Shown here: in pieces, positions 40,145 to 64,000 of the stretch | Position numbering within the stretch: position 1 is the first letter of the stretch | How the letters are laid out: each line of letters begins with the position of its first letter | Sequence record: NC_031927.1 | Reading direction: 5' to 3' (one strand) | DNA: 64,000 bases | Translations under genes and position numbers: made by a program | Notes under the pieces: model-generated | What the model saw: the letters and a program-made list of their open reading frames with translations, nothing else | Told to the model about the DNA's origin: nothing | Databases searched by the model: none

Positions 40145-40582
40145 ATGAAAAAAGTAATAGCAACATTAGCAACAGCAGCACTAGCAACAACAGTAGCACT
40201 ACCAGCAAAGGCTGGATATGGCTGGGATGTTACACACAATACTAGGTTTGAGTTTGTACCAGTCAGAGACAGAGAAACAAAGGTAGTAAACCATGTCATT
40301 TCAACTGGTGTTAATTTTGTGTGGACGCGATATGATGGAGAAAAGTTTGCATATCCTATCACAATAGAACATAAGGGAAATACCTGTGCTAGACCACCAA
40401 CACCCCGAGGTAGTAGTCATCTAACTGTATGTGTTGATAAGAGTTACTATGTTATAAGTCCTAAATGGGAAAGGAGAGGTTACTATACCAATGTTGAGTT
40501 ACAGTGCAATCGCCCCATCAAAATTAATGATAAGTTCCTTAACTTACAGGGAGCTTGTGATCACCTCAGTACCACTAGGTGA
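40145..40582 (+). CDS. Putative exported protein
   Basis: MKKVIATLATAALATTVALPAKA signal peptide, four Cys. Confidence 0.7.
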   Translation: MKKVIATLATAALATTVALPAKAGYGWDVTHNTRFEFVPVRDRETKVVNHVISTGVNFVWTRYDGEKFAYPITIEHKGNTCARPPTPRGSSHLTVCVDKSYYVISPKWERRGYYTNVELQCNRPIKINDKFLNLQGACDHLSTTR

Positions 40583-40648: not shown

Positions 40649-42784
40649 ATGCACACTAAGAACTTCTATATGCAGATCATTCCAGGTGTGGATAATGCCT
40701 TTGGATTTGGTGATACTGAAGATACGTATGAGCAGCGTCAGAAGGGCTCTGACTACTCTAAGGTGGGTGGCTATGGTTTTGCCCTAGGTCAAAAGAAGTG
40801 GACTACACATGGTTGGTGGGAAGACCAGACAGTCATTGATAGGGCTCACCACCAGGATAAAGAAGTTCATAAATTTATTATGACTTTCCCTACTATGAGG
40901 AAGAAGGACGAGGTATTTACTTTTGAAAAGTCCTCAGGTCTTACTCTTGATATTATTAAGCATAAGATTGACGAGCAGTTCTTTTCTGGTGAGACAACAA
41001 ATCGTGTTGAACTTACTCCACGTAAGCACCAGAGTGAGTTCTTAGCTAAGGTTCAAGCAGAGTATCTTGAGTTCTTACTGTTCGCTAAGTGTAGAGCTGG
41101 TAAGTCTATTATGTCACTACTACACGTAAAAGAGCGAGGATATAAAGTAACTCTTATTGTTGCACGTATGACCTCCCCTAAGGGATCCTGGGAGAGTGAT
41201 AGTCGTGGGTTTACTAACTTCGACAATATGATATTCATTGACCTACAAGGTAATAAGAACTATGCTAAGGAGATTGAGTACTGGACTAATACTAATAAGC
41301 AGGTAGTTCTATTCGACACTGTTCAAGGTGCTATATCTAAGGACTTCAACATTGACTTCCTTATTTACGATGAGGCTCATATTGGAGCTAAGGATACTGC
41401 TAAGCAGTGGAAGTCCCTTAGGTCTATGATTGACTGCCCTATTCTATATGTAACAGGTACTGCCTATAAGATGGCAGATGACTTTAGTGAAGATAATAAG
41501 TTTGTATACTCATACTTTGAGGAGCAGTTAGATAAGAAGAATGGGCTCATTGAGCGCCCTAGTATGAATGTTATCCTAGCTAAGTATGAGACTGAAGAGT
41601 ATCAGGCTATCTATGGAGATGACCCAGATGCTATGAAGAACCTATTCCAGATGGATGGTTCTAAGTTCGCTCAACCAGCACTAGTGAGTGAGTTCATTAA
41701 GATGTACTTTATGAATGACCGTAGTATCCGTAAGTTTAGTGATCGCCTTCTTAATGATAGTAATCACATTTATATGACTCTACCTAGTGTGGCTGCTTGT
41801 TACGCATTCAGTGAGTTGCTAGCATCTACTAGGTTCGCTCCTCTAGTTGTTACTGGAGATAGTAAGAAGTCTAATAAGGATATCAGTAAGCATATTCAAG
41901 AGAACCCCACTGGCTCTATTGTTATCACTCGTACAGCTAACGTTTTAGGTGTTACTGCTGACGTTGATACTGTTATGAATTGTGCTGAAGGTAGCTCTAT
42001 TGAGTTCTGGACACAGTTCGCATTCCGTGGTGGTAGTGGTGACAATGACTGGAGAGTTATTGACTTCGCACCTCAACGTTGTCTTGAGTCTCTCCGTGAG
42101 ATGTATGTCTTAGCGTGTGAGAATGCACCTACTATCAGTGAGTTTGAACTACTTGACTATGTGAACGTTACTGAATGGGATAGGGGCTTCGAGACACTAA
42201 CACAGGAGCAGGTTGAGAACATTCTTGGCTCAGATCCAGCTGGTAGTGTACGTCTAATCTCAGGATTAACAACTGCATTGAATGTAGAACTACTAGCTGG
42301 TATGGGGTTCAATGCTAACCTCACTCCTGTTGATAGTAACATTGCTAAGCAGGTAGTTGTTAATGATAACGAAGCTAACGGTAAAGGTGCTCTTAGTCGC
42401 ACATCTACACCAGAAGAGAAGGAGAAGGCAGAGAGCCTACGTCGTGAGGTTATGCACGTTCAGGCTATTCTTGAGCGTATCCCTCTCTCTATCCTCCATA
42501 GTCATATGTTATCTACTACCATCACTGGTATTGATAGCCTCATCACAAGTGAAGCCTATCTGAATGATACTAGTGATTATGATGGTGTTCTAGCTAAGTA
42601 TATGGAGAAGGATCAGTCGTTCTATCAGCGTCTCAACCGCCGTGTGGCTGCTGTATCTCTCGATATTAAAGCACAGATGAACCGTGATCTAGTACAGACA
42701 CTTGATAAACTGTCCATCTCTGCTACCGCACAGATGCCTATCCCTGCTACACTACTAACTGAAATGCACACCAGTTATGCCTAA
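40649..42784 (+). CDS. SF2 helicase with N-terminal T5orf172/GIY-YIG-like domain (restriction subunit-like)
   Basis: N-terminal FYMQ...FGFGDT...YEQR...DKEVH...DEVF; PRKHQ, KCRAGKS (motif I), DEAH, VTGT (motif III), QFAFRGG (motif VI). Confidence 0.82.
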   Translation: MHTKNFYMQIIPGVDNAFGFGDTEDTYEQRQKGSDYSKVGGYGFALGQKKWTTHGWWEDQTVIDRAHHQDKEVHKFIMTFPTMRKKDEVFTFEKSSGLTLDIIKHKIDEQFFSGETTNRVELTPRKHQSEFLAKVQAEYLEFLLFAKCRAGKSIMSLLHVKERGYKVTLIVARMTSPKGSWESDSRGFTNFDNMIFIDLQGNKNYAKEIEYWTNTNKQVVLFDTVQGAISKDFNIDFLIYDEAHIGAKDTAKQWKSLRSMIDCPILYVTGTAYKMADDFSEDNKFVYSYFEEQLDKKNGLIERPSMNVILAKYETEEYQAIYGDDPDAMKNLFQMDGSKFAQPALVSEFIKMYFMNDRSIRKFSDRLLNDSNHIYMTLPSVAACYAFSELLASTRFAPLVVTGDSKKSNKDISKHIQENPTGSIVITRTANVLGVTADVDTVMNCAEGSSIEFWTQFAFRGGSGDNDWRVIDFAPQRCLESLREMYVLACENAPTISEFELLDYVNVTEWDRGFETLTQEQVENILGSDPAGSVRLISGLTTALNVELLAGMGFNANLTPVDSNIAKQVVVNDNEANGKGALSRTSTPEEKEKAESLRREVMHVQAILERIPLSILHSHMLSTTITGIDSLITSEAYLNDTSDYDGVLAKYMEKDQSFYQRLNRRVAAVSLDIKAQMNRDLVQTLDKLSISATAQMPIPATLLTEMHTSYA

Positions 42785-43823
42785 GCTTCTTATTGTAGGC
42801 GATCCTACGGGCTCCACCTCTCTTGATGCTATCAACAACAGGGGCTGGAGTCCAGAAGATATAACAGTGTGGGAGAACGATCCCCGTCACGTGTATGCTA
42901 TTAAGTGTATTAATGGTATAATAGATATTATATTAGATGACGATAAACTAACTAAACTGAAGGAATGTACTATGAAGTTTGACGTTATTATTGGTAACCC
43001 ACCTTATCAGAATAATACTAAGAATGGTGCTGGTACTGGATCAGGTAGTTCAGCTCTATACTTAGACTTTGTTAGTTTAGCTAAGAGTATTTTGAAGCCT
43101 GGTGGTACCATCTCACTAATTACTCCCACAAGTATTGTAAGTGGTAGTAGTGACAAGACTAAGTATCTTGTAGGTAAAGATGCATTGTATAGTGTGTCTT
43201 CTATTGACTTTACCGCTAACGAGCAGTTCAGCATCGGTGAGCGAGTATGTCGATGGACTGCTACTAATAGTGATGAGAGTATAGTAACTAAACTATCTGA
43301 TGGACGTGAGGTTGACCTTAGAGAGGTTCCTTTTGTTGTTGAGGACTATGAAGTTAGTAATATTGTTCAGTCTCTTCTAGAGGCACCTGGACCACGCATA
43401 GAGTTTTCTAACCGTGGTGGCTTTGCATCTAAGGGTAGCTCTATTAAGACAGATACTCAGACACCACAGACACCATACCTAGTTGACTTCAATGGTAAGG
43501 ATAAGTATGTGTCTGAAAAGTGCAATAACTACCATCAGCCTAAGATCTTTGCCCCTCAGCAGACTAATCCTAAGAACTTTGAGTTCTACTGTGCAGAGGA
43601 TAAAGGTGCTAGTCAGTCAACATACACCTGTCCATTCAATACCATTGAAGAGGCACAAGTAGCCGTTGATATTCTAAACAACCCATACTATCTCTGGATT
43701 GTAAATAAAGTACGTATTGCAAGTCGCTTACGTAAGACACATCTTGACAGATTTCCCATTGTTGATATAGAATCAATCCTAAGCAAAGAGCAAAAGTCCT
43801 ACATTGACAGTAACCCACTATGA
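42777..43823 (+). CDS. Eco57I-like adenine methyltransferase, catalytic (NPPY) + TRD part
   Basis: KFDVIIGNPPY, LYLDFV, LKPGG.ISLITP; motif I region degenerate (IVGDPTGS). Confidence 0.85.
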   Translation: MPKLLIVGDPTGSTSLDAINNRGWSPEDITVWENDPRHVYAIKCINGIIDIILDDDKLTKLKECTMKFDVIIGNPPYQNNTKNGAGTGSGSSALYLDFVSLAKSILKPGGTISLITPTSIVSGSSDKTKYLVGKDALYSVSSIDFTANEQFSIGERVCRWTATNSDESIVTKLSDGREVDLREVPFVVEDYEVSNIVQSLLEAPGPRIEFSNRGGFASKGSSIKTDTQTPQTPYLVDFNGKDKYVSEKCNNYHQPKIFAPQQTNPKNFEFYCAEDKGASQSTYTCPFNTIEEAQVAVDILNNPYYLWIVNKVRIASRLRKTHLDRFPIVDIESILSKEQKSYIDSNPL

Positions 43824-46844: not shown

Positions 46845-47633
46845 ATGGAAACCAATTCAGAAACTATGAACAAGCTACTCAATGGTGAATGTCTTGAAGT
46901 TATGAAGACACTAGCTGATAATTCAATTGATATGGTTTTCTGTGACCTACCTTATGGTACTACACAGAACTCTTGGGATACTATCATCCCATTCGATGAG
47001 TTGTGGGCAGAGTATCATCGTATCGTCAAGATTGATGGTGCTATTGTACTAACAGCACAACCACCATTTGATAAGGTCTTAGCTTGTTCAAATCTAAAAG
47101 ACTTCCGTTATGAATGGATATGGGAGAAGAATAAAGCAACTGGGCACCTAAATGCTAAGAAGATGCCTATGAAGGCACACGAGAACATACTAGTATTTTA
47201 TAGAAAGCTTCCTACATATAACCCACAGATGACCACAGGTCATAAGCCAATGAATGCAGTATTGCCTAAGAGCAATATGCCTGCACCAAAGGAGAAGAGA
47301 AACTATAACCACGTAGAAGAGCGACTAGGTAATCCTGGTGGTGGAACTAGTAGGTATCCAAGAGATACTGTTAGGTTCCCCGTTATCAACAATGATGACC
47401 CAAAGAAGTTCCACCCAACACAGAAACCTATCCCCTTGATTGAGTACTTCATCAAGACATATTCTAATCCAGGTGATGTTGTACTAGACAATTGTATGGG
47501 CTCAGGTTCTACCTGTATTGCTGCATCTAATCTAGATCGACAGTTTGTTGGTATTGAGATGAGTGAGGAATATTACAACCTAGCAGTTGAGTGGGTCGAA
47601 TCCGAACGTAGACTCACCCAGTTCTTTAACTGA
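46845..47633 (+). CDS. Beta-class N6-adenine/N4-cytosine DNA methyltransferase
   Basis: GECLEVM, DLPYG (motif IV), KAHENILVF, HPTQKP, VLDNCMGSGST (motif I after IV). Confidence 0.95.
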   Translation: METNSETMNKLLNGECLEVMKTLADNSIDMVFCDLPYGTTQNSWDTIIPFDELWAEYHRIVKIDGAIVLTAQPPFDKVLACSNLKDFRYEWIWEKNKATGHLNAKKMPMKAHENILVFYRKLPTYNPQMTTGHKPMNAVLPKSNMPAPKEKRNYNHVEERLGNPGGGTSRYPRDTVRFPVINNDDPKKFHPTQKPIPLIEYFIKTYSNPGDVVLDNCMGSGSTCIAASNLDRQFVGIEMSEEYYNLAVEWVESERRLTQFFN

Positions 47634-52016: not shown

Positions 52017-52390
52017 AATGAAACGCTACGGTCTTTATTGGTTACGAGCACTCACACTAGGTGCTGGTCTTAATGCTCTTATTGTAAGCTCATTGATGAA
52101 TCATAGGGATTGGAAGTTTCATCAAGCAGCACCTATTGGAGCTCTTGTGTGTGTTAATTGTTCCTTTGCTGCTGACCGTCTTATCTTTGGTAGAACAAAA
52201 AAGAAGGCAGTTGTACCCACCATAACACCTACCGAGACACCCCACAGTTGCCCTGTATGCTCTGACTACCCTTGTGTATGTGACGCTTGGAAAAGTGGCT
52301 CATAAGAGCATACAGTGCCCACTCATAGACTATAATTACAGGAGTAGACACACCCCCACCTCAATCAAACAAACTACACACAAATAACAA

Positions 52391-52549
52391 ATGAAAACAT
52401 CACACACTGTATTAATTTCAGCTACAGCAGCATCTTCATTCGTCATTGGTAAGAACTATGCACCTCGAACAACTTGGGACATTTTTATTGTTTTGTTGCT
52501 AACTGCTATTATGAGTCTTATGATTCAATTTGTGAGGGAAAATAGTTGA
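52391..52549 (+). CDS. Small membrane protein, copy 1
   Basis: Manual ORF MKTSHTVLISATAASSFVIGKNYAP... Confidence 0.6.
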   Translation: MKTSHTVLISATAASSFVIGKNYAPRTTWDIFIVLLLTAIMSLMIQFVRENS

Positions 52550-52639
52550 GGTATATTCTAATTCCACCCATTGCAGCGCCTATTCACCTGTCGCGCCACT
52601 AATTGTACTTGCAGTAATCTTTACTTTGGATAATAAACT

Positions 52640-52816
52640 ATGAAAACATCACACACTGTATTAATTTCAGCTACAGCAGCATCTTCATTCGTCATTGGTA
52701 TGAACTACGCACCTATAATATCTTATAATATTTTTGCTGTTTTAGCACTAACTGCTGTATTTACTCTTATTGTTAAAGGAATCCAATTCATTATTAAAAA
52801 CCCAAATGAAATCTAA
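52640..52816 (+). CDS. Small membrane protein, copy 2
   Basis: Manual ORF MKTSHTVLISATAASSFVIGMNYAP...; first ~60 nt identical to copy 1. Confidence 0.6.
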   Translation: MKTSHTVLISATAASSFVIGMNYAPIISYNIFAVLALTAVFTLIVKGIQFIIKNPNEI

Positions 52817-55142: not shown

Positions 55143-55284
55143 TATACTTTGTAATTATACTTTGAGTTAATTGTTATTGCTTAATGAGGCATTATGTGCC
55201 AATAGGTGAAGTGTCCACAAAACCGAATATTTACCTCAGGATGCCTTATAGTTGATTCATCAACACAAAGGGGCATCCTTTTTA

Positions 55285-55566
55285 ATGAATACCGAGTATC
55301 AACTGGCAGACACAATTACTGAAACTTTAACAACAATTTCATCTCGTTGTAGTCAGTTAATCAATGAAGATCGCCTAGAAGATGTTACATCAATGCTCAA
55401 TGAGTGGACACTTAATGATGACACAGTAGTGCTGACTCACTTCCTCAATGAGACTACTGATAGTATTGAAGATCAGCTGATGTATGTTACTATGAGTGAA
55501 ACTCACATCACAGAGGGGTCATTCTGGTTTGATCCCGAGGTTGAACTCCCCACCGACAACATTTAA
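55285..55566 (+). CDS. Array cassette gene, hypothetical
   Basis: ATG after the element at 55196. Confidence 0.65.
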   Translation: MNTEYQLADTITETLTTISSRCSQLINEDRLEDVTSMLNEWTLNDDTVVLTHFLNETTDSIEDQLMYVTMSETHITEGSFWFDPEVELPTDNI

Positions 55567-55848
55567 TTTTATTAAAAAAATGAATCTTACAAACGACCAG
55601 CGCCTAGCTCTTGCTCAACGTATTACTGATGAGTTCAATTTGTTCGTTAAAGAAGAACTAGTATATCAAGTTGATGATATGAAAGATAACGACCAGCTGA
55701 ATCACGACTACTATATTACATCTAGCGATCAAGAGGATATCACAAAACTAGTAATTGACCTCATCGCTGTGCCAGTTAGCTAGTGTCCACTAAATCCCCC
55801 ACTGGTCCGCTAGTGGGTTATATTACATACATCAACACAAGAACCCCA

Positions 55849-56037
55849 ATGACCTCCGATCTCATCGAACTAATGGAAGCACAGGGATCCGATGGAATCC
55901 TAGAAATGATGGCTGATAGAGATGGTTCAGCTTTCTTGCTTGATAGGCTCTTTGCTTCAATGGATGAGACGGAAGTTGCCGAGTGGACCACCTGGTTAAA
56001 GACCAGTTTGAAAACCTACACATCAAACCAACCATAG
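55849..56037 (+). CDS. Array cassette gene, hypothetical
   Basis: ATG after element; track start 55783 lies in the repeat. Confidence 0.65.
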   Translation: MTSDLIELMEAQGSDGILEMMADRDGSAFLLDRLFASMDETEVAEWTTWLKTSLKTYTSNQP

Positions 56038-56080
56038 GGTCCTCAATGCCCTATACTAATCACATCAACACAGGACCCCA

Positions 56081-56278
56081 ATGGACATCAGAGTATACTG
56101 TACATCTGAGGAGAGTTTAAACCAAGCAGTGGAGCTTATCCAAATGCTAGACGATAATGCTAGTATCTCCACGTGGGAGCCTGATGGGGACGATGGGACC
56201 TATGGGGCATTCGTTGATGGTATTGACGATCAACTAGCCACCACCTTGGGACAGTTGTACGAAGTGTCCACTGACTGA
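56081..56278 (+). CDS. Array cassette gene, acidic hypothetical
   Basis: ATG after element. Confidence 0.7.
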   Translation: MDIRVYCTSEESLNQAVELIQMLDDNASISTWEPDGDDGTYGAFVDGIDDQLATTLGQLYEVSTD

Positions 56279-56329
56279 CCCACTGGGCTCCTAATGCCCT
56301 ATACTAATCACATCAACACAGGAACCCCA

Positions 56330-56485
56330 ATGAAAAAGTCATTCAAGGTTTGTCTCTCAAAGATGGATAATCCAAATTTCCTTAATTTTATTATTGTTGA
56401 GGATTGTGTTGATATGGATGAATGTGTTGAACATATTCACTCCACCGAAAGAGGATGGGTGATTGATTCTATCAAGCAGCTTTGA
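56330..56485 (+). CDS. Array cassette gene, hypothetical
   Basis: ATG after GGAAC RBS; track start 56294 lies in the hairpin. Confidence 0.65.
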   Translation: MKKSFKVCLSKMDNPNFLNFIIVEDCVDMDECVEHIHSTERGWVIDSIKQL

Positions 56486-56567
56486 TGGGACACTTAGCTA
56501 AGTGACCACTGAACCACCCATAGGGCACTCAATGCCCTATACTAATCACATCAACACAAAACAACCA

Positions 56568-56888
56568 ATGACCACTGCCCCACATTTCGTTCGTTCTACA
56601 ATGAGCCTCGGACCTACTGAGAGCATCTGCTTCAAAGTGAGCTGTGACGCAAAAGCACAATGGGAGAATGGAATCTTCCACAACTCACGATATGGAATCT
56701 TCTTTCTTTGTGAGGAGGGAGGGAAGCTGAAGCTTGAGCTCACATCAAAGGGACTCGACACCATTAAGTTCCGTAAGTGTACAGTCAAGAGTGAAGCAGG
56801 GGCAGTGAACCGCATCCTAAAATGGATGGGTGATATTATGGGAGACAGTATCTTCCTTCCTATGCCTGAGTTTGAGGAAGCAAACTAA
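56568..56888 (+). CDS. Array cassette gene, hypothetical (W.NGIFHNSRY)
   Basis: ATG after element. Confidence 0.7.
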   Translation: MTTAPHFVRSTMSLGPTESICFKVSCDAKAQWENGIFHNSRYGIFFLCEEGGKLKLELTSKGLDTIKFRKCTVKSEAGAVNRILKWMGDIMGDSIFLPMPEFEEAN

Positions 56889-57222
56889 CAGCGCTCTATT
56901 TAACCTTCGCATCATAATATACTGCGCAGCATATAACATGCACGCAGTATATAATATACATCACACACATTACTAATGAACAACTACATCGACGACGCAG
57001 CACTCTATGAAGATATACTGCGCGAGGACGAAGTATATAATGGGCTACGCAGGCTTGAGCTGCCTGTAAGGGATGGACGCAGGCAACAGCGTAGACGCAG
57101 GGAGCGCCAGCGTCAAGCTTGTTACAATAAGTATCACAACTAGGACAGTATACTAACTGTCCACCAAACCAACACAGCGCAGCCATCTGCGCTATATTAT
57201 ATACATCAACACAAGGAACCCA

Positions 57223-57390
57223 ATGAACACATTCACACCCAATCCTATGCTTGAGATGTTAATGAGTCGTGAACAGTTAATGGAAGATATTGATGTGATT
57301 GTTGATAGTTTTGACCGTGATTCAGAAAGTAATGATGATTTAGTTTCCAGGCTATGTGATGCTGTATGTGCTAATTTCCCCGCTAAGTAA
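57223..57390 (+). CDS. Array cassette gene (55 aa)
   Basis: Manual ORF MNTFTPNPMLEMLMSREQLMEDID...LCDAVCANFP. Confidence 0.7.
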   Translation: MNTFTPNPMLEMLMSREQLMEDIDVIVDSFDRDSESNDDLVSRLCDAVCANFPAK

Positions 57391-57727
57391 TCCTAACTCA
57401 CACTACACTATCTAACAATGAACCTCGGTCATCTTCAAACAAAAATGTTGACGTTCGTCAATGAGCGTCCTGGTTTTCATCACATAAGAAAAGACAGAGA
57501 TACACTTAGAGTGGCTAATTCACTCGCAAAGCGTAACTTAATAATACTTGAAGAATATCTTGGAGACTATACTATTCGGGCTATTGATAGCGAACGTGTT
57601 GATGTAAATGATTATAACTACGCAGGGAGTAGGCATCACTATTGAGTGTGCCAGTTGCGCTAGTGTCCACTAAATCACCCACTGGGCTCCTGGTGGGTTA
57701 TATTAATCACATCAACACAAAACCTCA

Positions 57728-57970
57728 ATGAACACCCTCAAAGATCTCCAAGCTAGAGTTGCCGCACTAATTGAACAGCAAGGCGAAGATTCTGTATGTG
57801 CTGCGTGGATTTACACTGGCGAAGATGTTATTAGATATGACGAAAATTGTGATGCAATACGTCAGCCCAAAGAATTGAGTGATAAAGTAATAAATGGTTT
57901 AGATGACTATGATTACATTTATCAAGTTATTGATGAGGCTATTACTCAAGAATTAGATGAGTGTGTGTGA
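57728..57970 (+). CDS. Array cassette gene, hypothetical
   Basis: ATG after element. Confidence 0.75.
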   Translation: MNTLKDLQARVAALIEQQGEDSVCAAWIYTGEDVIRYDENCDAIRQPKELSDKVINGLDDYDYIYQVIDEAITQELDECV

Positions 57971-58050
57971 CAGTTGGGCTAGTGTCCACTGGGGCTAGCA
58001 GCTCCCCTCCTAGCTGCTACAATTGATTCATACCAAACAAGGGAACTCAA

Positions 58051-58251
58051 ATGACCACCGTTGAAATCAACTACGAAATCGCCAAGCTTCGTGAGGAGCG
58101 TCAGCAGCTGCTGAACCGTGCGAACGTAATCGGTGATTGTATCCAAGAGCTTGCGCAGCTGCGCACCAAACAGCAACTTGCCTCAAAGCGTGAGCACGAT
58201 GAGCGCTTCGAGTCCAGTGAAGACCTATTCGCTGAGATGTTTGGCGGTTGA
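58051..58251 (+). CDS. Array cassette gene, coiled-coil
   Basis: ATG after element; heptad pattern. Confidence 0.75.
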   Translation: MTTVEINYEIAKLREERQQLLNRANVIGDCIQELAQLRTKQQLASKREHDERFESSEDLFAEMFGG

Positions 58252-58325
58252 TTAAGTGGCACAAGGGGGCTAGGCAAGCCCCCACCACCTGCTACAATTG
58301 ATTCATACCAAACAAAGGAACCCCA

Positions 58326-58592
58326 ATGACTTCAGTTTTTCTAGTATTTCATGTTGAGTATCCTTTCAACGAAGGCTGTGATAATGTTATTGGTGATGAA
58401 TTCTCTAAAGTATTTCATACCAAAGAAGATGCTGAAGAGTACATTAAGAAGACTGATGTTTCAGAGTCAGTACGAGTTGCTAAGTGGGCAAAAGAAAAGT
58501 GTGATAGGTTGGGTTGGGGTGAGGACATGCTTAAGCGCCTGATTAAATCAAATGTCAAAGAATGGGAGATTAAAGAAATACCATTCGGCTGA
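58326..58592 (+). CDS. Array cassette gene, hypothetical
   Basis: ATG after element. Confidence 0.75.
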   Translation: MTSVFLVFHVEYPFNEGCDNVIGDEFSKVFHTKEDAEEYIKKTDVSESVRVAKWAKEKCDRLGWGEDMLKRLIKSNVKEWEIKEIPFG

Positions 58593-58973
58593 TGCCCTCT
58601 CGCTACAAATAAAAACCACTAAAAAACACAAAATGATCTCAACTCAAATCACTATTACAATCAAACGTAGCGAGTGGGAATGTTACATCGACACCCCAGA
58701 TTCAGTCATCGAAACTATTAACAACTACTTTGCCTTTGTATTACAATCACGTGATACGGCATTAGAAGCACAAGCTGAAATCTTTAAGTTTATGTGCATG
58801 TTTAGTGAGTTTGGTTTCTATGATAGTGAGCCTAGGCAATGTGCAACAGATACTATTAACGATTTCTTCGGGACAAGCTTGAGCAGGTGGGACAGTTGAG
58901 CTAGTGGCACAAGGGAGCCGCCACTGGCTCCCACAGCTGCTATGATTACAAAGTAATCGAGGGAGACACCCCA

Positions 58974-59165
58974 ATGAACATTCAAGTCAACGGCTACGCA
59001 ATCGACACCCTTAAGCAAGCGCTTCAAGAGTCTTCGATGCTATGGCAAGAGCGTATCGACCAAGCCGAGCGTGGCGAACGTCAGAACCTCAGCATCGAGG
59101 GAGCTCGTGCGATGCAAGATGACTTGAGGGACATCCTAGAGCAAATCAGGTTGCAAGACGCCTGA
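58974..59165 (+). CDS. Array cassette gene, hypothetical
   Basis: ATG after element with GAGGGAG RBS. Confidence 0.75.
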   Translation: MNIQVNGYAIDTLKQALQESSMLWQERIDQAERGERQNLSIEGARAMQDDLRDILEQIRLQDA

Positions 59166-59238
59166 TCAACTGGCACACGGGAGCCACACAGGCTCCCACC
59201 ACCTGCTACAATTGATTCATACCAAACAAAGGAACCCA

Positions 59239-59496
59239 ATGAACGGCTGGACTAACTACGAAACCTGGAACGCATCACTTTGGATCAGCAACGAGGAGTT
59301 CCTCTACAACACCGCTCGCGCTTGCGTGACCTATTGTGACCCCAGCGAGCAGCCTTGGACCAAGTTCGTCCGTTGTATGACCGAGGGACAGATCGGCAGC
59401 TTCCTTGGTGAGACTGGCGATGGCGTCCGCTGGGATGATACCAGCATCAACGCCGATGAGATGAACGAGATGATGCTAGAGTTAGTCGCTGACTGA
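59239..59496 (+). CDS. Array cassette gene, conserved phage protein (NGWTNYETWN..LW..N)
   Basis: MNGWTNYETWNASLWISNEE...T.DGV.W.D pattern recalled from many phage small proteins. Confidence 0.8.
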   Translation: MNGWTNYETWNASLWISNEEFLYNTARACVTYCDPSEQPWTKFVRCMTEGQIGSFLGETGDGVRWDDTSINADEMNEMMLELVAD

Positions 59497-59567
59497 ACTG
59501 GCACAAGGGGGCTCGCAGCCCCCTCCCACAGCTGCTACAATTACAGAGTAATCAAAACACAGCACCA

Positions 59568-59738
59568 ATGACCGAAATGACTTTCTACGTGATGTTCAGC
59601 TCCGAGGAGCTTACAGAGCCAGACTACATTGGTCCTTTCTACAAGCTAGAAGACGCCGAAGATTACGCAGATCACCAGAACCAAGGGCTTGCGAACAACG
59701 GCATCCCTGGCTGGGTTGCTTCCTACGGGGTCGTCTGA
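59568..59738 (+). CDS. Array cassette gene (56 aa)
   Basis: Manual ORF with YIGPF..LEDAEDYA. Confidence 0.7.
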   Translation: MTEMTFYVMFSSEELTEPDYIGPFYKLEDAEDYADHQNQGLANNGIPGWVASYGVV

Positions 59739-60236
59739 ACCAATCTCCAAACTGTCCCAATGGGGTTGACGGTTCCCCTCAAAACCGTTATATTAGATTC
59801 ATCGGTTGAGCCACTCTCTACAGGCTCCCGGTTATCCACCTCATTTCTCTACAACAATGAAAACCACACTTTCCACAATCTTCAGCCGCAATAACGTGAT
59901 GAATGCCCTCCTGGCTCTCTGCACTGCTATCGAGTTCTGCTACGATATGGGCGCACGCTTCGGCACCTGGTATCGCAACGGCGGCAACGCACAGCTCCGC
60001 AATGCCTTCGTAATGGCTGTAGCCGCTCTCCTATGGCTCGGCGAGACCGCTAGGCTAGGTTATGCCGTGGTTCGCCGTGATGGTCCCCAATGGCTCGCAC
60101 AGGCTAACGCAACACGCCATCGTATCAGCCGCGCATTCAGCTACGAGTATGCCGCCTGAGGCACTGTCACAAGGGGGCTAGGCAAGCCCCCATCACCTGC
60201 TACAATTGATTCATACCAAACAAAGGGAGCCACCCA

Positions 60237-60467
60237 ATGTCCAGCACCACTTACACCCAGGCAGCTTACGCCGAAGCAATCCGCCGCCTCTCGGCTGGCT
60301 ACGTTTCAGAGTTTGCTGAGTTTGCTGCAGGTGATGAGAGGATGCATGAGCTGATGATGGAACTTGCTTCTGAGTTCGTTGATGCCAATCTACCCATCGT
60401 CAGGGAGGAGGACGCAATCGACGTAGCTGCTGAGCTCCACTTGGGCATCACAATCCGTGCCGTGTGA
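60237..60467 (+). CDS. Array cassette gene, hypothetical
   Basis: ATG after element. Confidence 0.75.
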   Translation: MSSTTYTQAAYAEAIRRLSAGYVSEFAEFAAGDERMHELMMELASEFVDANLPIVREEDAIDVAAELHLGITIRAV

Positions 60468-60549
60468 CGGCTGACCAACTATCACAAGGGGGCTTGCCTA
60501 GCCCCCACCACCTGCTACAATTGATTCATACCAAACAAAGGAACCTCAA

Positions 60550-60864
60550 ATGCGCAAGATTGAAATCCAAATGAACCGCGCTGTTCAGTCTGGCACCAAT
60601 TTCAGCCAAGCTAACACCTCAGTTCATCATCACGAGGGCGTAGCAATTGTCCGCCTACACGGTAGCAAGATCGCTGAGGTAGGCGACGATTTCATCACTC
60701 TCTTCGATGGTGGCTTCCAATCCAATACTACCAAGAGCCGCCTCAATGCCTTGATGGCTGAGTTCTGCTCACCCGGTGAGAACGTATTCCAGAAAGCTTA
60801 CCAGTGGTTCATTCGCGCTAACGGCGTCACCATCCCATTTGAGTCAGGTGTGACACTCCGCTAA
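60550..60864 (+). CDS. Array cassette gene, conserved phage protein (RLHG..IA...TTKSRLNA)
   Basis: ATG after element; recognisable small phage protein pattern. Confidence 0.8.
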   Translation: MRKIEIQMNRAVQSGTNFSQANTSVHHHEGVAIVRLHGSKIAEVGDDFITLFDGGFQSNTTKSRLNALMAEFCSPGENVFQKAYQWFIRANGVTIPFESGVTLR

Positions 60865-60931
60865 ACTGGCACAAGCTCCCTAGCGGGAGCTCCCCCAGCT
60901 GCTACAATTGATTCATACCAAAGGAACCACA

Positions 60932-61501
60932 ATGAACACCTTTCTGACCTCCTCATTCCAAAACGTTCGCTCTTCAAAGCGTACTGACGAACTCCACACC
61001 GTCTTGCTAGCTGAGGTACTGGAAGCTAACCCCCAGTGGGCAGGCTACGACTGGCAGTTCGAATACCGCCTTCCCGTTGACGGCTTCGGTGGAACCTTTG
61101 ATATTGATATCGCCGGTTTCGTCAACGGTGAGCTGAAGGTGGCTGTCCTGGCTAAGGCAATGAACTCAAACGTCAATAAGAATATCAAAAACTACGCTAA
61201 CACCACCATTGGCGAAGCTGCCCGTCTGACCTATGCCCCTGGCTTAGACCTCGAGGCTGTGCTCTTCGTTTCAGTCCTTCCCCGCACTGCCCCCCGCTTC
61301 AATAAGGCAGGCGAGGTTGTGGGACTTGACAACGTGCTAAGCGCTAAGGCTCGCACCAACATCGGCAATATCATCGAAGCTCAGTACGGTGGGCTGGTTC
61401 AGGTCATCGACCTATTCTTCGATATCGACAATATCTCAGAGATGCTGACCTCTGCCGACTTTCAAACTATCACCGTATCGAACGTCGATAAGGTGAGCTA
61501 A
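60932..61501 (+). CDS. Array cassette gene, PD-(D/E)xK restriction-nuclease-like protein
   Basis: E...D..GGTFDIDIA...AVLAK..NSN..KN..NY...GE; track start 60908 lies in the repeat. Confidence 0.5.
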   Translation: MNTFLTSSFQNVRSSKRTDELHTVLLAEVLEANPQWAGYDWQFEYRLPVDGFGGTFDIDIAGFVNGELKVAVLAKAMNSNVNKNIKNYANTTIGEAARLTYAPGLDLEAVLFVSVLPRTAPRFNKAGEVVGLDNVLSAKARTNIGNIIEAQYGGLVQVIDLFFDIDNISEMLTSADFQTITVSNVDKVS

Positions 61502-61584
61502 GCCAATTGAGCCACTGGCACAGGGAGCCTAGCAGGGCTCCCCCCAGCTGCTACAATTGATTCATACCAAACAAAGGAACTCAA

Positions 61585-61863
61585 ATGAAAATCTCACTCG
61601 ATCAGCAAGTCGCTCAACTCGCAGCCGAAGGTCATCAAGAGATTGCAGTCATCAAACTCCCTAGTCAGGCAACCCGCAAGCGTCGCAAGCCTAGCAAGCG
61701 TCGCACTACCTCTACGAATGCGGTCAGCCAAACTGCCTACACTCAAACCGAGAGCCGCAACCTAGGCAAGATCAATTCAGCCTATGCGCGTCAGCATAGT
61801 GCCGATAGGAGGGCAGCAGCTCAACAGCGAGCAGCCGAGCTTAAAGGTCAGCCAATCTTCTAA
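61585..61863 (+). CDS. Array cassette gene, basic protein
   Basis: RKRRKPSKRR basic tract; ATG after element. Confidence 0.72.
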   Translation: MKISLDQQVAQLAAEGHQEIAVIKLPSQATRKRRKPSKRRTTSTNAVSQTAYTQTESRNLGKINSAYARQHSADRRAAAQQRAAELKGQPIF

Positions 61864-61933
61864 GAGGCACAAGGGGGCTAGGCAAGCCCCCACCAGCTGC
61901 TACAATTGATTCATACCAAACAAGGAACCCACA

Positions 61934-62383
61934 ATGGCTACTCTCAACTATTCACCCGCTCAGCAGACTCAACTCATTGAGTTCTATCAGCAATGGCTGC
62001 CTAGAGTCAATGCCTTTGGATACGACAATCTTCCCGATGGTTATCACACATACTACCGCCACGGCAAGAAGCTGGCTAAGGCAGCAGCAGCCGCTAAGGT
62101 AGCCGAAGCTAAAGCAGCTGCCCGTTCTATTCAGTGGACTGCCGAAGAATATGACGCGGTTGCTCTTGGCTACATCACATACGGCAAGAATGGATATAAG
62201 CAAGCAATCAAGGATTTTAGGTTAGTTAGCCAGCGTCACACAGACAACGCCATTAAGCTGGCAACCTACAGCTGTGCTCACCTTGATACCAAGTCAGACG
62301 TAGATGGATTAGCCGATTATGCCGAAGGTCTCCTAGACGCACTCAACGCAATTGAGCCTAAGCGATTCAAGGGCACCCGCTGA
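61934..62383 (+). CDS. Array cassette gene, hypothetical
   Basis: ATG after element. Confidence 0.78.
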   Translation: MATLNYSPAQQTQLIEFYQQWLPRVNAFGYDNLPDGYHTYYRHGKKLAKAAAAAKVAEAKAAARSIQWTAEEYDAVALGYITYGKNGYKQAIKDFRLVSQRHTDNAIKLATYSCAHLDTKSDVDGLADYAEGLLDALNAIEPKRFKGTR

Positions 62384-62454
62384 TTTCCCCTAGGGGCTAG
62401 CCACCTAGCCCCGATCTATGCTACAATTCATTCATACCAAACCAGGAACCATCA

Positions 62455-62673
62455 ATGCCTTTCTCACCTGCCTGCCGCCTTTCAGACCAGACCCGCGTAT
62501 GGGTTGAGCGCTCAATCTATGAAGGGTGCGATTGGCAAATCGAAAAGCACTTTGGACCAGCACAAGGGCAAGACGCCCAGACCATTGCCGCTCGCTTCGC
62601 TGCTACGTATGGGGATGAGGGCAAGACGATGAGCCTAGCTAACCCCTGCAGCGGAATCAGAGCCGAAGATTGA
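62455..62673 (+). CDS. Array cassette gene, hypothetical
   Basis: ATG after element. Confidence 0.7.
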   Translation: MPFSPACRLSDQTRVWVERSIYEGCDWQIEKHFGPAQGQDAQTIAARFAATYGDEGKTMSLANPCSGIRAED

Positions 62674-62741
62674 TCAGCCAAGGGGGTTGACGGATCAGCC
62701 CTCTATGGTCTACAATTCATTCATACCAAACAAGGGAACCG

Positions 62742-62948
62742 ATGACGACTCTTCACTCTATCGAAAATCTCACAGCCGAGCTCGACCGCCTAGAGGGAAT
62801 CAAGAATCGCCTAGCAGGGCTGATCGTAGACCTTAAGCTCACCAACCCAGACTCACTATTCATCGGACTCTATCAGGACCGCCTCAAGTTCAATGTTCTC
62901 CCAGCCATCAAGATCACCAAGGGCTACATTCTCAAGACCAGCAACTGA
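62742..62948 (+). CDS. Array cassette gene, hypothetical
   Basis: ATG after element. Confidence 0.72.
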   Translation: MTTLHSIENLTAELDRLEGIKNRLAGLIVDLKLTNPDSLFIGLYQDRLKFNVLPAIKITKGYILKTSN

Positions 62949-63018
62949 CCAGCCAAGGGGGTTGACGGATCAGCCCCCTATGGTCTACAATTCATTCATA
63001 CCAAACAAGGCAACCCAA

Positions 63019-63111
63019 ATGGACCCCATCTCATTCGCAATCGGTATGGTCGGCGCAGCTCTGGTCGGTATCGTCAACGCCGAGCTGATCAAAGCAAACA
63101 ATAAAGATTGA
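63019..63111 (+). CDS. Array cassette gene, 30-aa single-TM peptide
   Basis: MDPISFAIGMVGAALVGIVNAELIKANNKD after element. Confidence 0.65.
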   Translation: MDPISFAIGMVGAALVGIVNAELIKANNKD

Positions 63112-63429
63112 TCAGCCCAGCTCATCCCACTCAATCAAAACTTTTTTTCAAATGACTCCTTCCATCTTTATCGACACTGAGAACAGCTCAACAGCCGTTG
63201 ATGCCATCGTGCTCACCCCCCGTAGAGTTCAGTTCGCTTGGGCATCTGGTTCCGTCTCCGCTCACACCGTCCGCCTCCGCGATCAAGTGAGATTCTACGT
63301 TCGCCACTTGATGATGGATGAGGCTTTGAGCTACGGGCAATGGGCAAACTTCGTTCTAGATGAGCAGCTCTGACCCCTAGGCATCCTGCCCCATCCGTGC
63401 TACAATTCACTCAAGTCAATCAACCGACA

Positions 63430-63618
63430 ATGCTCAACATCACAGCCGACCAGAATGGAACCATCTCTTGGCAAGAGGCTCTCCGCTTCGTGAATGAGGC
63501 AGCAGCTGATCAGCGCAACTTCCTCATCCGTGATTTCTTACAGTCTGCTTACGCTGGATTGAGAGGAGAGAGAATCGACCTAGGTGAGCTCAACGTCTGG
63601 ATCACAGAGAACAGCTGA
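63430..63618 (+). CDS. Last array gene, hypothetical
   Basis: ATG after a degenerate element; followed by terminator. Confidence 0.7.
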   Translation: MLNITADQNGTISWQEALRFVNEAAADQRNFLIRDFLQSAYAGLRGERIDLGELNVWITENS

Positions 63619-63626
63619 ATCACACA

Positions 63627-63650
63627 GCCTCCCGCAAGGGGGGCTTTTTT
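63627..63650 (+). terminator. Terminator closing the cassette array
   Basis: GCCTCCC-GCAA-GGGGGGC then T6. Confidence 0.85.
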
Positions 63651-64000
63651 AATGCGTGCGTGTCAACAGTGATCGTTCGTGATAGGACAGTGCTATCCAT
63701 TCGTGCGTTGAGGACAGTGATATGGCGTTGCGATCCATCGATGGTGGGCGGCGTTACCCCGTATATAAAAAGTACCTTCTATCTAAGCTATAAAAGTAAA
63801 GATCGACCTATACTTATCGCTATTTAAAAAATTCTCCCAGATATTCTATGGACCCCAGAGTTGGCTCAGAGTTGCCTCAGAATACTCAGTGCCCCCCAGA
63901 GTTGTCTCTATATTATACCACACTTCTTAAATATTCCCCCATAAAAAAATCCCCCAGGTATTCAATACCCCTAGGAGATGATTATTATTATCTTGATAAC

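Follow-up and report, generated by a model that had tools for sequence, protein, structure and literature searches.

The window analysed here is a 64,000-nt stretch of DNA comprising bases 1–64000 of Synechococcus phage S-CAM7 isolate 0910CC49 (KU686212 = NC_031927), a T4-like cyanophage (Kyanoviridae, genus Mazuvirus) with a 216-kb genome. At 55.2–63.6 kb, its + strand carries a tightly packed array of small genes, most of which are headed by a copy of a ~75-nt element containing an upstream box, a GC hairpin, a −10 sequence and a leader with a ribosome-binding site (RBS). Analysis of these elements in the window and in related phages revealed that small ORFans sit in self-contained promoter–hairpin cassettes, as predicted from their sequence, and that exchange within the repeat has left natural isolates differing in entire cassettes. 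The array is probably a cyanophage-specific form of the promoter-early stem-loop (PeSL) cassettes, exchanged by homologous recombination.

The array forms the 3′ end of a 39-kb stretch (~28.6–67.6 kb) of small same-strand genes annotated as hypothetical, flanked on one side by tail/baseplate genes and on the other by the gp25/gp6 baseplate-wedge module. This stretch is a typical hyperplastic region of a T4-like phage, and the array is its densest part. Re-derivation of genes from the conserved leader–ATG geometry gave 28 + strand open reading frames (ORFs) of 30–189 aa between 55285 and 63618, ~22 of which are headed by an element (13 type B, 7–8 type A and 2–3 degenerate or variant copies). 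A first-pass annotation of the same DNA had proposed about 20 genes of 30–190 aa, with a repeat of ~70–80 nt before almost every ORF; the number and sizes of the genes were accurate, and the repeat is present where it had been placed, far above chance. The six genes counted without an element are g55580, g57418, g58633 and g63152, where the intergenic gaps are short and no element is recognisable, plus variants included in the feature list. GC content in the type B block (59000–63600) is 52–53%, compared with ~41% for the genome and the rest of the window, and that of the cargo genes is uneven (34%–57%), suggesting a mixed and partly foreign origin of the cassettes. Two low-GC genes (58326–58899, 37–39% GC) adjoin genes of 53–57% GC.

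Structure and distribution of the element

From 5′ to 3′, the element comprises the upstream stop codon, a box (type A, AGTGTCCAC; type B, ACTGGCACA), a GC hairpin and a −10 sequence, which reads TATACT or TATATT in type A copies and is an extended −10, TACAAT with TGn before it, in type B copies. A conserved leader of 23–30 nt, rich in A and C and ending in AAGGAACCCCA, then leads to the ATG. The 3′ end of every copy is the conserved ...AAAGGAACCCCA-ATG, that is, the Shine–Dalgarno sequence (a GGA-type RBS) and start codon of the next gene. The GC hairpin, −10 box and conserved leader/RBS that had been described in the first reading are thus all present. A scan with consensus hexamers placed −35-like sequences (TAGGCA, TTGCCT, TTGACG) 16–18 nt 5′ of the −10, within the hairpin loop; TTGGCA is a further form of the loop hexamer.

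Copies fall into two sequence subtypes, type A at 55.2–57.7 kb and type B at 58.0–63.0 kb (13 copies), and a repeat search sorted them into families of 70–88 nt. The type B core GCTACAATTSATTCATACCAAA had 11 matches at 58016–63005, all on the + strand, with 0 expected from 100 shuffles; the type A core TATAYTAnnnACATCAACACA had 7 matches at 55247–57719 and a few more upstream, with 0.2 expected. A 27-nt core, CTGCTACAATTGATTCATACCAAACAA, is identical in eight copies. A covariance model (R1) was built from the 13 type B copies, and the window was scanned with filters off. R1 recovered exactly these 13 copies (52–96 bits) at 57978–63021, with no other strong match in the window and nothing at 64–213 kb, including the structural and replication modules. 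An Rfam scan of 54–64 kb at permissive thresholds returned no relevant family and one chance match resembling a small nucleolar RNA. The features of the array are listed below; MT586120 is another S-CAM7 isolate and L006 an uncultured relative.

55208–55284, +: type A element, variant (−10 TATAGT), heads g55285; box AAGTGTCCACA 27 nt 5′ of TATAGT; leader ...CATCAACACAAAGG
55781–55848, +: type A element, heads g55849; box TAGTGTCCACT, N27, TATATT; hairpin CCCACTGG/CTAGTGGG (−12.6 kcal/mol), T-rich tail
56030–56080, +: type A element without clear box, heads g56081; hairpin, TATACT, leader ATCACATCAACACAGG
56262–56329, +: type A element, heads g56330; box AAGTGTCCACT, N27, TATACT
56500–56567, +: type A element, heads g56568; box AAGTGACCACT, N27, TATACT; 14-nt palindrome CACTTAGCTAAGTG across the box
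56889–56975, +: divergent promoter–hairpin region, heads g56976; hairpin ACTGCGC...GCGCAGT (−12.2 kcal/mol) immediately 5′ of TATAAT
57155–57222, +: type A element, heads g57223; box AACTGTCCACC, N27, TATATT; terminator-like hairpin AGCGCAG/CTGCGCT
57661–57727, +: type A element, heads g57728; box TAGTGTCCACT, N27, TATATT; hairpin −12.7 kcal/mol
57978–58050, +: hybrid A/B element, heads g58051; type A box TAGTGTCCACT and spacing of 27 with type B −10/leader TGCTACAATTGATTCATACC; R1 79.9 bits
58252–58325, +: type B element, heads g58326; R1 96.5 bits; hairpin GGGGGCT-AGGCA-AGCCCCC; TAGGCA-16-TACAAT with TG
58900–58973, +: type B element, variant leader, heads g58974; R1 56.3 bits; hairpin GGGAGCC/GGCTCCC; −10 TATGAT
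59166–59238, +: type B element, heads g59239 (DUF7249); R1 86.8 bits; Pfam DUF7249 over residues 2–82
59494–59567, +: type B element, variant leader, heads g59568; R1 56.4 bits
59750–59856, +: variant element, long leader, heads g59857; hairpin GGGGTTGACGGTTCCCC; TTGACG-17-TATATT
60160–60236, +: type B element, heads g60237; R1 81.3 bits
60475–60549, +: type B element, heads g60550 (Kyano_Gp96); R1 90 bits; Pfam PF23790
60862–60931, +: type B element, heads g60932, left edge of replacement slot; R1 68.1 bits; hairpin AGCTCCC/GGGAGCT
60932–61501, +: cargo g60932, likely a restriction-endonuclease-like nuclease by its model; unrelated genes in the same slot in MT586120 and L006
61511–61584, +: type B element, heads g61585, right edge of replacement slot; R1 87.1 bits
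61860–61933, +: type B element, heads g61934; breakpoint in hairpin loop
62380–62454, +: type B element, heads g62455; R1 61.4 bits; from 62392 on, again similar to both other isolates
62669–62741, +: type B element, heads g62742, junction of 197-nt indel; chimera of the two flanking copies of the other isolates
62941–63018, +: type B element, heads g63019 (30-aa hydrophobic peptide); R1 62.7 bits; 96% identical to the copy at 62671
63374–63429, +: degenerate type B element, heads g63430; TAGGCA-17-TACAAT with TG, weak hairpin; R1 15.7 bits
63626–63650, +: canonical intrinsic terminator closing the block; 8-bp stem, then T6

Cassette exchange among S-CAM7 isolates and uncultured relatives

Three sequenced S-CAM7 isolates were compared: 0910CC49 (the window), KU686213 and MT586120. 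Both KU686213 and MT586120 contain an extra 197-nt unit between g62455 and g62742 that is absent from the window; the unit consists of one element and an ORF for a 47-aa hydrophobic peptide, and two element copies flank it. The window element at 62669–62741 matches the first of these flanking copies in its 5′ part and the second in its 3′ part, and the crossover lies inside a 25-nt identical stretch, GCCAAGGGGGTTGACGGATCAGCCC, in the hairpin.

Replacements were found at two further cassettes. In MT586120, g60932 is swapped, from just after the ATG to the stop codon, for a gene without detectable similarity: identity is lost just past the ATG and is back at the stop codon at 61501. The same slot holds a third unrelated gene in L006, and the three occupants belong to different PHROGs. 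MT586120 also carries a 33%-identical allele in place of g61934, between flanks of ~97% identity; the left breakpoint falls in the hairpin loop immediately after GGGGGCTAG, the right one where the next element starts. At g61934, KU686213 is chimeric, with an additional breakpoint within the gene.

Comparison of L006 with the window, cassette by cassette, revealed three other genes in place of g60237 and the absence of g61934 and g63019. Two of the genes replacing g60237 (L006 4202–4438 and 3905–4126, − strand) are tandem paralogues of 79 and 74 aa that both start with MNLYIINEVL...; one is headed by an element of its own, and translation of the other is coupled to that of the upstream gene. 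Non-orthologous element copies of the window and L006 are 100% identical over 62 nt, compared with ~80–84% identity for the genes; the elements are therefore more conserved than the genes. Within the window itself, the hybrid A/B element (57978–58050) sits exactly at the boundary of the type A and type B blocks. Cargo families common to S-CAM7, ACG-2014f and the contigs L004, L006 and L019 occur in an order that differs between genera and contigs. In L019, homology to the window starts at the −10 of the element 5′ of the g60932 homologue; only the −10/leader part of that element is common with the S-CAM7 copy, and its hairpin goes with the upstream neighbour, which argues that the element acts as a junction and not as a unit that travels intact. 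The comparison of gene order among relatives, which the first-pass annotation had named as a check on its proposal, thus supported the repeat as a recombination junction.

Indels in the corresponding region of ACG-2014f

Phage ACG-2014f (Atlauavirus) has a region of its own upstream of gp25 with ~30 related elements. In an alignment of this region from four isolates, in which elements make up 6.7% of the columns, 3 of the ~9 indel events had both edges in elements: a 95-nt indel that is a duplicated element, and indels of 258 and 300 nt that are each an element plus a gene. Their junction elements are chimeric, and the crossovers fall within runs of identity, one of 35 nt that takes in the −10 and leader and one of 31 nt that spans the leader, the ATG and the first three codons. 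The position of the crossover varies by event and tracks the longest identical stretch, pointing to homologous rather than site-specific recombination. Several non-element indels in the region overlap HNH/endonuclease genes (L010 23723–24118, 26590–27300, 29401–29823 and 31406–31834); elements would thus be one of at least two routes of plasticity, and the overlap suggests homing endonucleases as a second driver in this region. The population study of ACG-2014f reported some intergenic recombination breakpoints and makes no mention of promoters, stem-loops or PeSLs (PMC5112629).

Covariation and predicted terminator character of the hairpin

Nearly all copies contain stable hairpins, those of type B ranging from −12 to −22 kcal/mol, and the stem sequences vary by copy (GGGGGCT/AGCCCCC, GGGAGCC/GGCTCCC, AGCTCCC/GGGAGCT, GGGGCTAG/CTAGCCCC). 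Covariation was analysed in 59 copies, 54 of them distinct, taken from S-CAM7 and a second isolate, from ACG-2014f and from two uncultured contigs. A plain MAFFT alignment (A1) left several hairpins out of register, and covariation was counted on a model-based alignment (A2), with a slid-register control added since A2 favours structure. The 7-bp helix showed 30 double-sided changes versus 10.5 ± 2.7 in shuffles, none of 500 of which reached the observed value, and it outscored every slid register. The alignment and covariance model proposed earlier thus recovered the 13 type B copies and revealed helix covariation above the shuffled and slid controls. Further compensated stems were found in L019. 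Some ACG-2014f copies have lost the pairing and kept the loop hexamer, indicating that the hexamer and the pairing are separate constraints.

In the copies at 40582 and 44232, the hairpin between the box and the −10 is a textbook terminator (GCCCC...GGGGC, then a T-run), and several ACG-2014f and L019 copies carry a T-run after the stem. The number of T residues in the 8 nt 3′ of the stem is 3–5 in type A and 0–2 in type B. On these tail counts and T-run copies, the family may be described as a composite “terminator inside a promoter”, the predicted terminator character being weak in type B. The sole canonical terminator of the block, at 63626–63645 followed by T6, is the one that had been noted at first as closing it.

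A dyad at fixed distance from the −10

The pattern box-N(18–40)-(−10)-N(15–36)-ATG had 24 matches on the + strand and 0 on the − strand, versus 1.8 ± 1.4 in simulated sequence with both strands combined. The spacing from box to −10 is nearly fixed, 27 nt in 14 matches and 29 nt in 6, within an overall range of 27–30 nt. Matches span 31.8–60.9 kb; 5′ of 55 kb they head multi-gene operons at ~1 per 2 kb, and inside the array the pattern heads nearly every gene. By its position, the box is thus an element linked to predicted promoters and is not peculiar to the array.

The box forms one arm of a dyad with the consensus TGTGNCASTT-N4-AASTGKCCAC/GGCACA. The imperfect dyad reported in the first-pass annotation holds for its right arm (the box), which is present in almost every S-CAM7 copy, but the left arm, GNCAGTTG, which often holds the stop codon of the upstream gene, is clear in only about half. 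The imperfect dyad of ACG-2014f, TGTGACASTY-N4-RASTGGCACA, whose right arm is the box, is strongly conserved despite its overlap with the 3′ ends and stop codons of unrelated genes. The same dyad/box, at the same distance from the −10, heads small genes at 43–51 kb in phage Syn9, a member of a third genus; a box/dyad N27–30 from the −10 is thus common to S-CAM7, ACG-2014f and Syn9.

Two mismatches of the dyad are conserved, and the G/C position varies independently on each arm, which argues against an RNA stem, a reading that was rejected, and for a dimeric DNA-binding protein; the dyad is most likely the binding site of such a protein, predicted to control early transcription. TGGCAC was also considered as a sigma-54 site and rejected, since cyanobacteria are not known to have sigma-54 and there is no GC element at the required spacing. 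A CRP/NtcA-type site was ruled out as well, because its spacing does not fit. A non-canonical early promoter is suggested by the upstream box, which is not of sigma-70 type and lies at a fixed distance. A novel regulatory element for Syn9 early genes that is conserved among T4-like cyanophages was reportedly described by Doron et al. (2016, ISME J). The box is probably this early element. The sigma-70-like early motifs of S-PM2 and Syn9 have been reviewed (PMC2984593). Two uncultured contigs encode, in a small-gene region, a 250-aa sigma-70-family protein with regions 2 and 4 (L021 94–846, L022 415–1167), a candidate phage sigma factor that could matter for how promoters are recognised in this group.

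Cargo genes

Searches of the 28 cargo proteins and 6 alternative cargo proteins with Pfam, PHROGs and PADLOC identified only two named Pfam families, Kyano_Gp96 (g60550) and DUF7249 (g59239); the others matched PHROGs of unknown function or nothing, and there were no defence-system matches. For the label “early anti-host genes” given in the first-pass annotation, there is a single cargo gene with a tentative function, g60932, which has a restriction-endonuclease-like predicted fold. A sequence search of g60932 against the PDB gave nothing significant, and 445 metagenomic homologues were found. Its AlphaFold model, made from 22 sequences, was confident, with a predicted local distance difference test (pLDDT) score of 87 and a predicted template-modelling (pTM) score of 0.84. 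The PDB fold matches are individually weak (best E = 1.3e-3, template-modelling score 0.46), and the top-ranked folds are mostly restriction-endonuclease-like (BstEII, PaqCI, EcoT38I, OkrAI, BglII, FokI and the R2 endonuclease domain); the invariant residues are D57, D59 and K69. A gene for an N6/N4 DNA methyltransferase follows a g60932 homologue in two metagenomic phage contigs (L021/L022 6001–7352), the stop codon of the one overlapping the start codon of the other, an arrangement that suggests a phage-borne type II restriction–modification pair. These folds, residues and the methyltransferase pairing together indicate that g60932 is probably a restriction-endonuclease-like (PD-(D/E)xK) nuclease of type II restriction type. 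Such a nuclease would fit an anti-host or anti-competitor role, but this concerns a single gene.

The S-CAM7 g60932 stands alone under a predicted early-type promoter. Its counterpart in the MT586120 slot (L003 14959–15549) shows MutH/Sau3AI-like motifs by eye (KGDRGQLLELALG ... DGEIK) and no Pfam match, and a D...EIK motif is present in the L006 occupant; nucleases may be the preferred occupants of this slot. Elsewhere in the hyperplastic region, a type II restriction subunit and an adenine-specific methyltransferase are annotated at 40670–43823 and 46845–47633, both headed by or near type A box–terminator–promoter elements (40582, 47628).

Annotation corrections and neighbouring features

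Judged by the fixed leader-to-ATG geometry, the GenBank start codons of several genes in 56294–63373 appear to be wrong. The corrected genes are 56330–56485, 56568–56888, 58633–58899, 59239–59496, 59568–59738, 59857–60159, 63019–63111 and 63152–63373; the start of 59239–59496 is supported by the DUF7249 match, which is full-length with that start alone. A − strand coding sequence at 56896–57186 is more likely the + strand gene 56976–57143, as annotated in isolate KU686213.

Upstream of the array, 52351–52816 holds a small tandem gene family (159–177-nt genes, paralogues 82% identical), in which a unit that the two other S-CAM7 isolates carry in duplicate is single in the window. The region 3′ of the terminator (63660–64000) is gene-poor and contains the direct repeat CCCCAGAGTTGKCTC twice as well as TATAAAA-type motifs resembling T4-like late promoters; a similar stretch precedes Syn9 gp91. 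Further on, between the array and the baseplate genes, lie three tandem paralogues of ~700 nt that are 83–87% mutually identical (record 64692–66865; L001 12693–14701).

Interpretation and alternative explanations

The array can be interpreted as a series of small genes that would each form their own expression cassette with a composite regulatory element. On read-through RNA of the upstream gene, the hairpin might serve as a terminator, an attenuator or a 3′-end stabiliser. The S-CAM7 genome has a T4-type recombination set, consisting of UvsY, gp46/47 and a recombination protein of UvsX type, and also codes for RegA and for the late sigma factor gp55. With elements every 200–600 bp in one orientation, the phage recombination machinery (UvsX, UvsY and gp46/47) could use the ~75-nt element as portable homology, and unequal or inter-phage crossovers in elements would then delete, insert, replace or reorder whole “element + gene” units and spare the neighbouring genes and their expression. 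The earlier view of the repeat as both promoter and recombination junction is retained in this form, with one promoter-like element predicted per gene and a junction for gain, loss and replacement, but without the analogy to an integron.

Several observations weigh against this interpretation. We infer transcription start sites, promoter and terminator activity, early timing, a box-binding protein and circular intermediates, and the start sites, the timing and the terminator function are read from sequence alone; promoter and terminator activity and mini-circles have been demonstrated for the PeSLs of RB49/phi1 and are putative for the S-CAM7 element. The −35-like hexamers match the consensus at only 4–5 of 6 positions, so that a weak −35 accompanies a strong −10, and the type B hairpins, with 0–2 T after the stem and hence no U-tract, are not canonical intrinsic terminators. 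Similarity boundaries by themselves overstate the case, because conserved repeats always look like islands of homology beside divergent genes; direct evidence comes only from the clean indels whose junction elements are chimeric, of which S-CAM7 has one and ACG-2014f three. These events are unpolarised, and each could be a gain or a loss. Most of the remaining ACG-2014f indels are far from any element.

The strongest alternative, which we nevertheless regard as unlikely, is that the elements are plain early promoters/terminators kept similar by selection, with recombination incidental and no role as a “gene store”. The box-N27-(−10) arrangement also heads multi-gene operons across 31–55 kb and in Syn9, where there is no dense array; crossovers anywhere in the longest identical stretch, and the lack of relation to elements in most ACG-2014f indels, are likewise what an incidental by-product would give. 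However, one element per 200–600 bp is far above the needs of expression, eight copies share an identical 27-nt core, identity extends over 62 nt between non-orthologous copies in the window and L006, and the element is more conserved than the flanking genes. This density, the identical cores and the conservation above that of genes argue for homogenisation or repeated exchange. The two explanations are not truly exclusive, as they differ only in whether plasticity has been selected.

Exchange by homologous recombination could also be embedded in a more elaborate system, to which we attach a low probability. A protein of the phage or the host would use the dyad and the −35-bearing hairpin as its operator, switching the whole set of early cassettes on or off and biasing recombination to these sites, and the GC-rich type B block would have been imported wholesale from another phage lineage. 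If this were true, cyanomyoviruses would have a dedicated integrase-free cassette-exchange system.

The integron-like store proposed in the first-pass annotation, in which a dedicated site-specific recombinase would act on the folded repeat at a fixed point, was abandoned as very improbable. One repeat per gene, a hairpin-forming core, a dyad as a possible protein site and cassette-sized indels would all fit it, but no integrase, other site-specific recombinase or transposase is present in the record annotation of 213 kb (1–213 kb; annotation only, with no hidden Markov model scan of every ORF). The repeats lie 5′ of genes and carry their own predicted promoters, and the crossovers differ by event, falling in the hairpin, in the −10/leader or in the leader and first codons; the L019 and S-CAM7 elements upstream of the g60932 homologue are alike in the −10/leader only. 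Least probable of all is a small mobile element similar to miniature inverted-repeat transposable elements (MITEs) or repetitive extragenic palindromic (REP) sequences, spread by transposition and later co-opted, since the many near-identical copies in one region and a GC-rich type B block that looks imported are outweighed by the lack of terminal inverted repeats, target-site duplications and an annotated transposase, by the gene orientation of all copies, with the 3′ end at the start codon and the 5′ end at or overlapping the stop codon, and by the same architecture occurring with lineage-specific sequence in three genera.

Marine T4-like cyanophages are among the most abundant ocean viruses, and their variable genes are mostly small ORFans. 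Homologous exchange of promoter–hairpin cassettes would provide a concrete and testable mechanism for the acquisition and shuffling of their early genes, possibly including host-takeover and nuclease genes. The value of the array lies in clear natural examples of cassette exchange, a predicted family-wide early-promoter dyad and use in annotation: the fixed leader-to-ATG geometry is a practical rule for correcting start codons and predicting early transcription units, and the conserved dyad should help to identify the early-gene regulator.

Comparison with known systems

Integrons require the IntI integrase and two kinds of site, attI and the 3′ attC sites, the latter being recombined as folded single strands at a fixed point, and their promoterless cassettes depend on one promoter, Pc. 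The S-CAM7 array resembles them in its short, unrelated same-strand genes with one structured repeat each and in cassette-wise gain and loss. Unlike integrons, it has no annotated integrase, no attC or attI, a repeat that lies 5′ of the gene, a promoter-like sequence on every cassette, and variable crossovers. REP sequences and bacterial interspersed mosaic elements (BIMEs) are likewise repeated intergenic GC hairpins that are able to stabilise upstream mRNA and to serve as recombination substrates; REPs, however, do not act as promoters, are found in either orientation and take no set position relative to start codons. Every S-CAM7 copy, in contrast to MITEs and REPs, is in gene orientation and abuts stop and start codons.

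The element resembles the early-gene element of T4-like cyanophages in having a conserved non-canonical motif 5′ of early genes in cyanomyoviruses. The work of Doron et al. is said to concern transcription control, and not a whole 75-nt repeat, a hairpin or gene shuffling. The references to PeSLs and to the cyanomyovirus early motif in the first-pass annotation were apt.

PeSLs are the closest system. They are ~70-bp intergenic cassettes containing a sigma-70-like early promoter, a stem-loop terminating upstream transcription, a Shine–Dalgarno sequence and a start codon; hyperplastic regions are densely populated with them, and recombination between copies causes ORFans to be inserted, deleted or replaced, with crossovers in the loop and nearby and with mini-circles (PMC2839356, PMC4122927). 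They have been described in RB49/phi1, T4/PST and KVP40/nt-1 (Arbiol et al. 2010, PMC2839356; Comeau et al. 2014, PMC4122927). In the searchable literature, they were tied to cyanophages only by a study of S-PM2, which found isolated PeSL candidates at a density judged too low (PMC4503421), and dense cyanophage arrays were not reported.

The S-CAM7 element differs from PeSLs in that its stem-loop lies inside the predicted promoter, between the dyad and the −10, rather than 5′ of a complete −35/−10, and its −35-like hexamer is in the hairpin loop. There is no AT-rich upstream region; instead, the GC stem and the box/dyad lie 5′ of the −35-like hexamer, and type B has an extended −10 and no U-tract. 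As in PeSLs, however, a ~70-nt intergenic repeat is concentrated in the hyperplastic region of a T4-like myovirus, a stem-loop (often a G-run/C-run in PeSLs) is combined with a promoter-type sequence, an RBS and a start codon once per small ORFan, and insertions, deletions and replacements between relatives, here in S-CAM7, L006 and ACG-2014f, map at the elements, with no dedicated recombinase needed. The array would thus extend the PeSL model from enterobacterial and vibrio phages to cyanophages.

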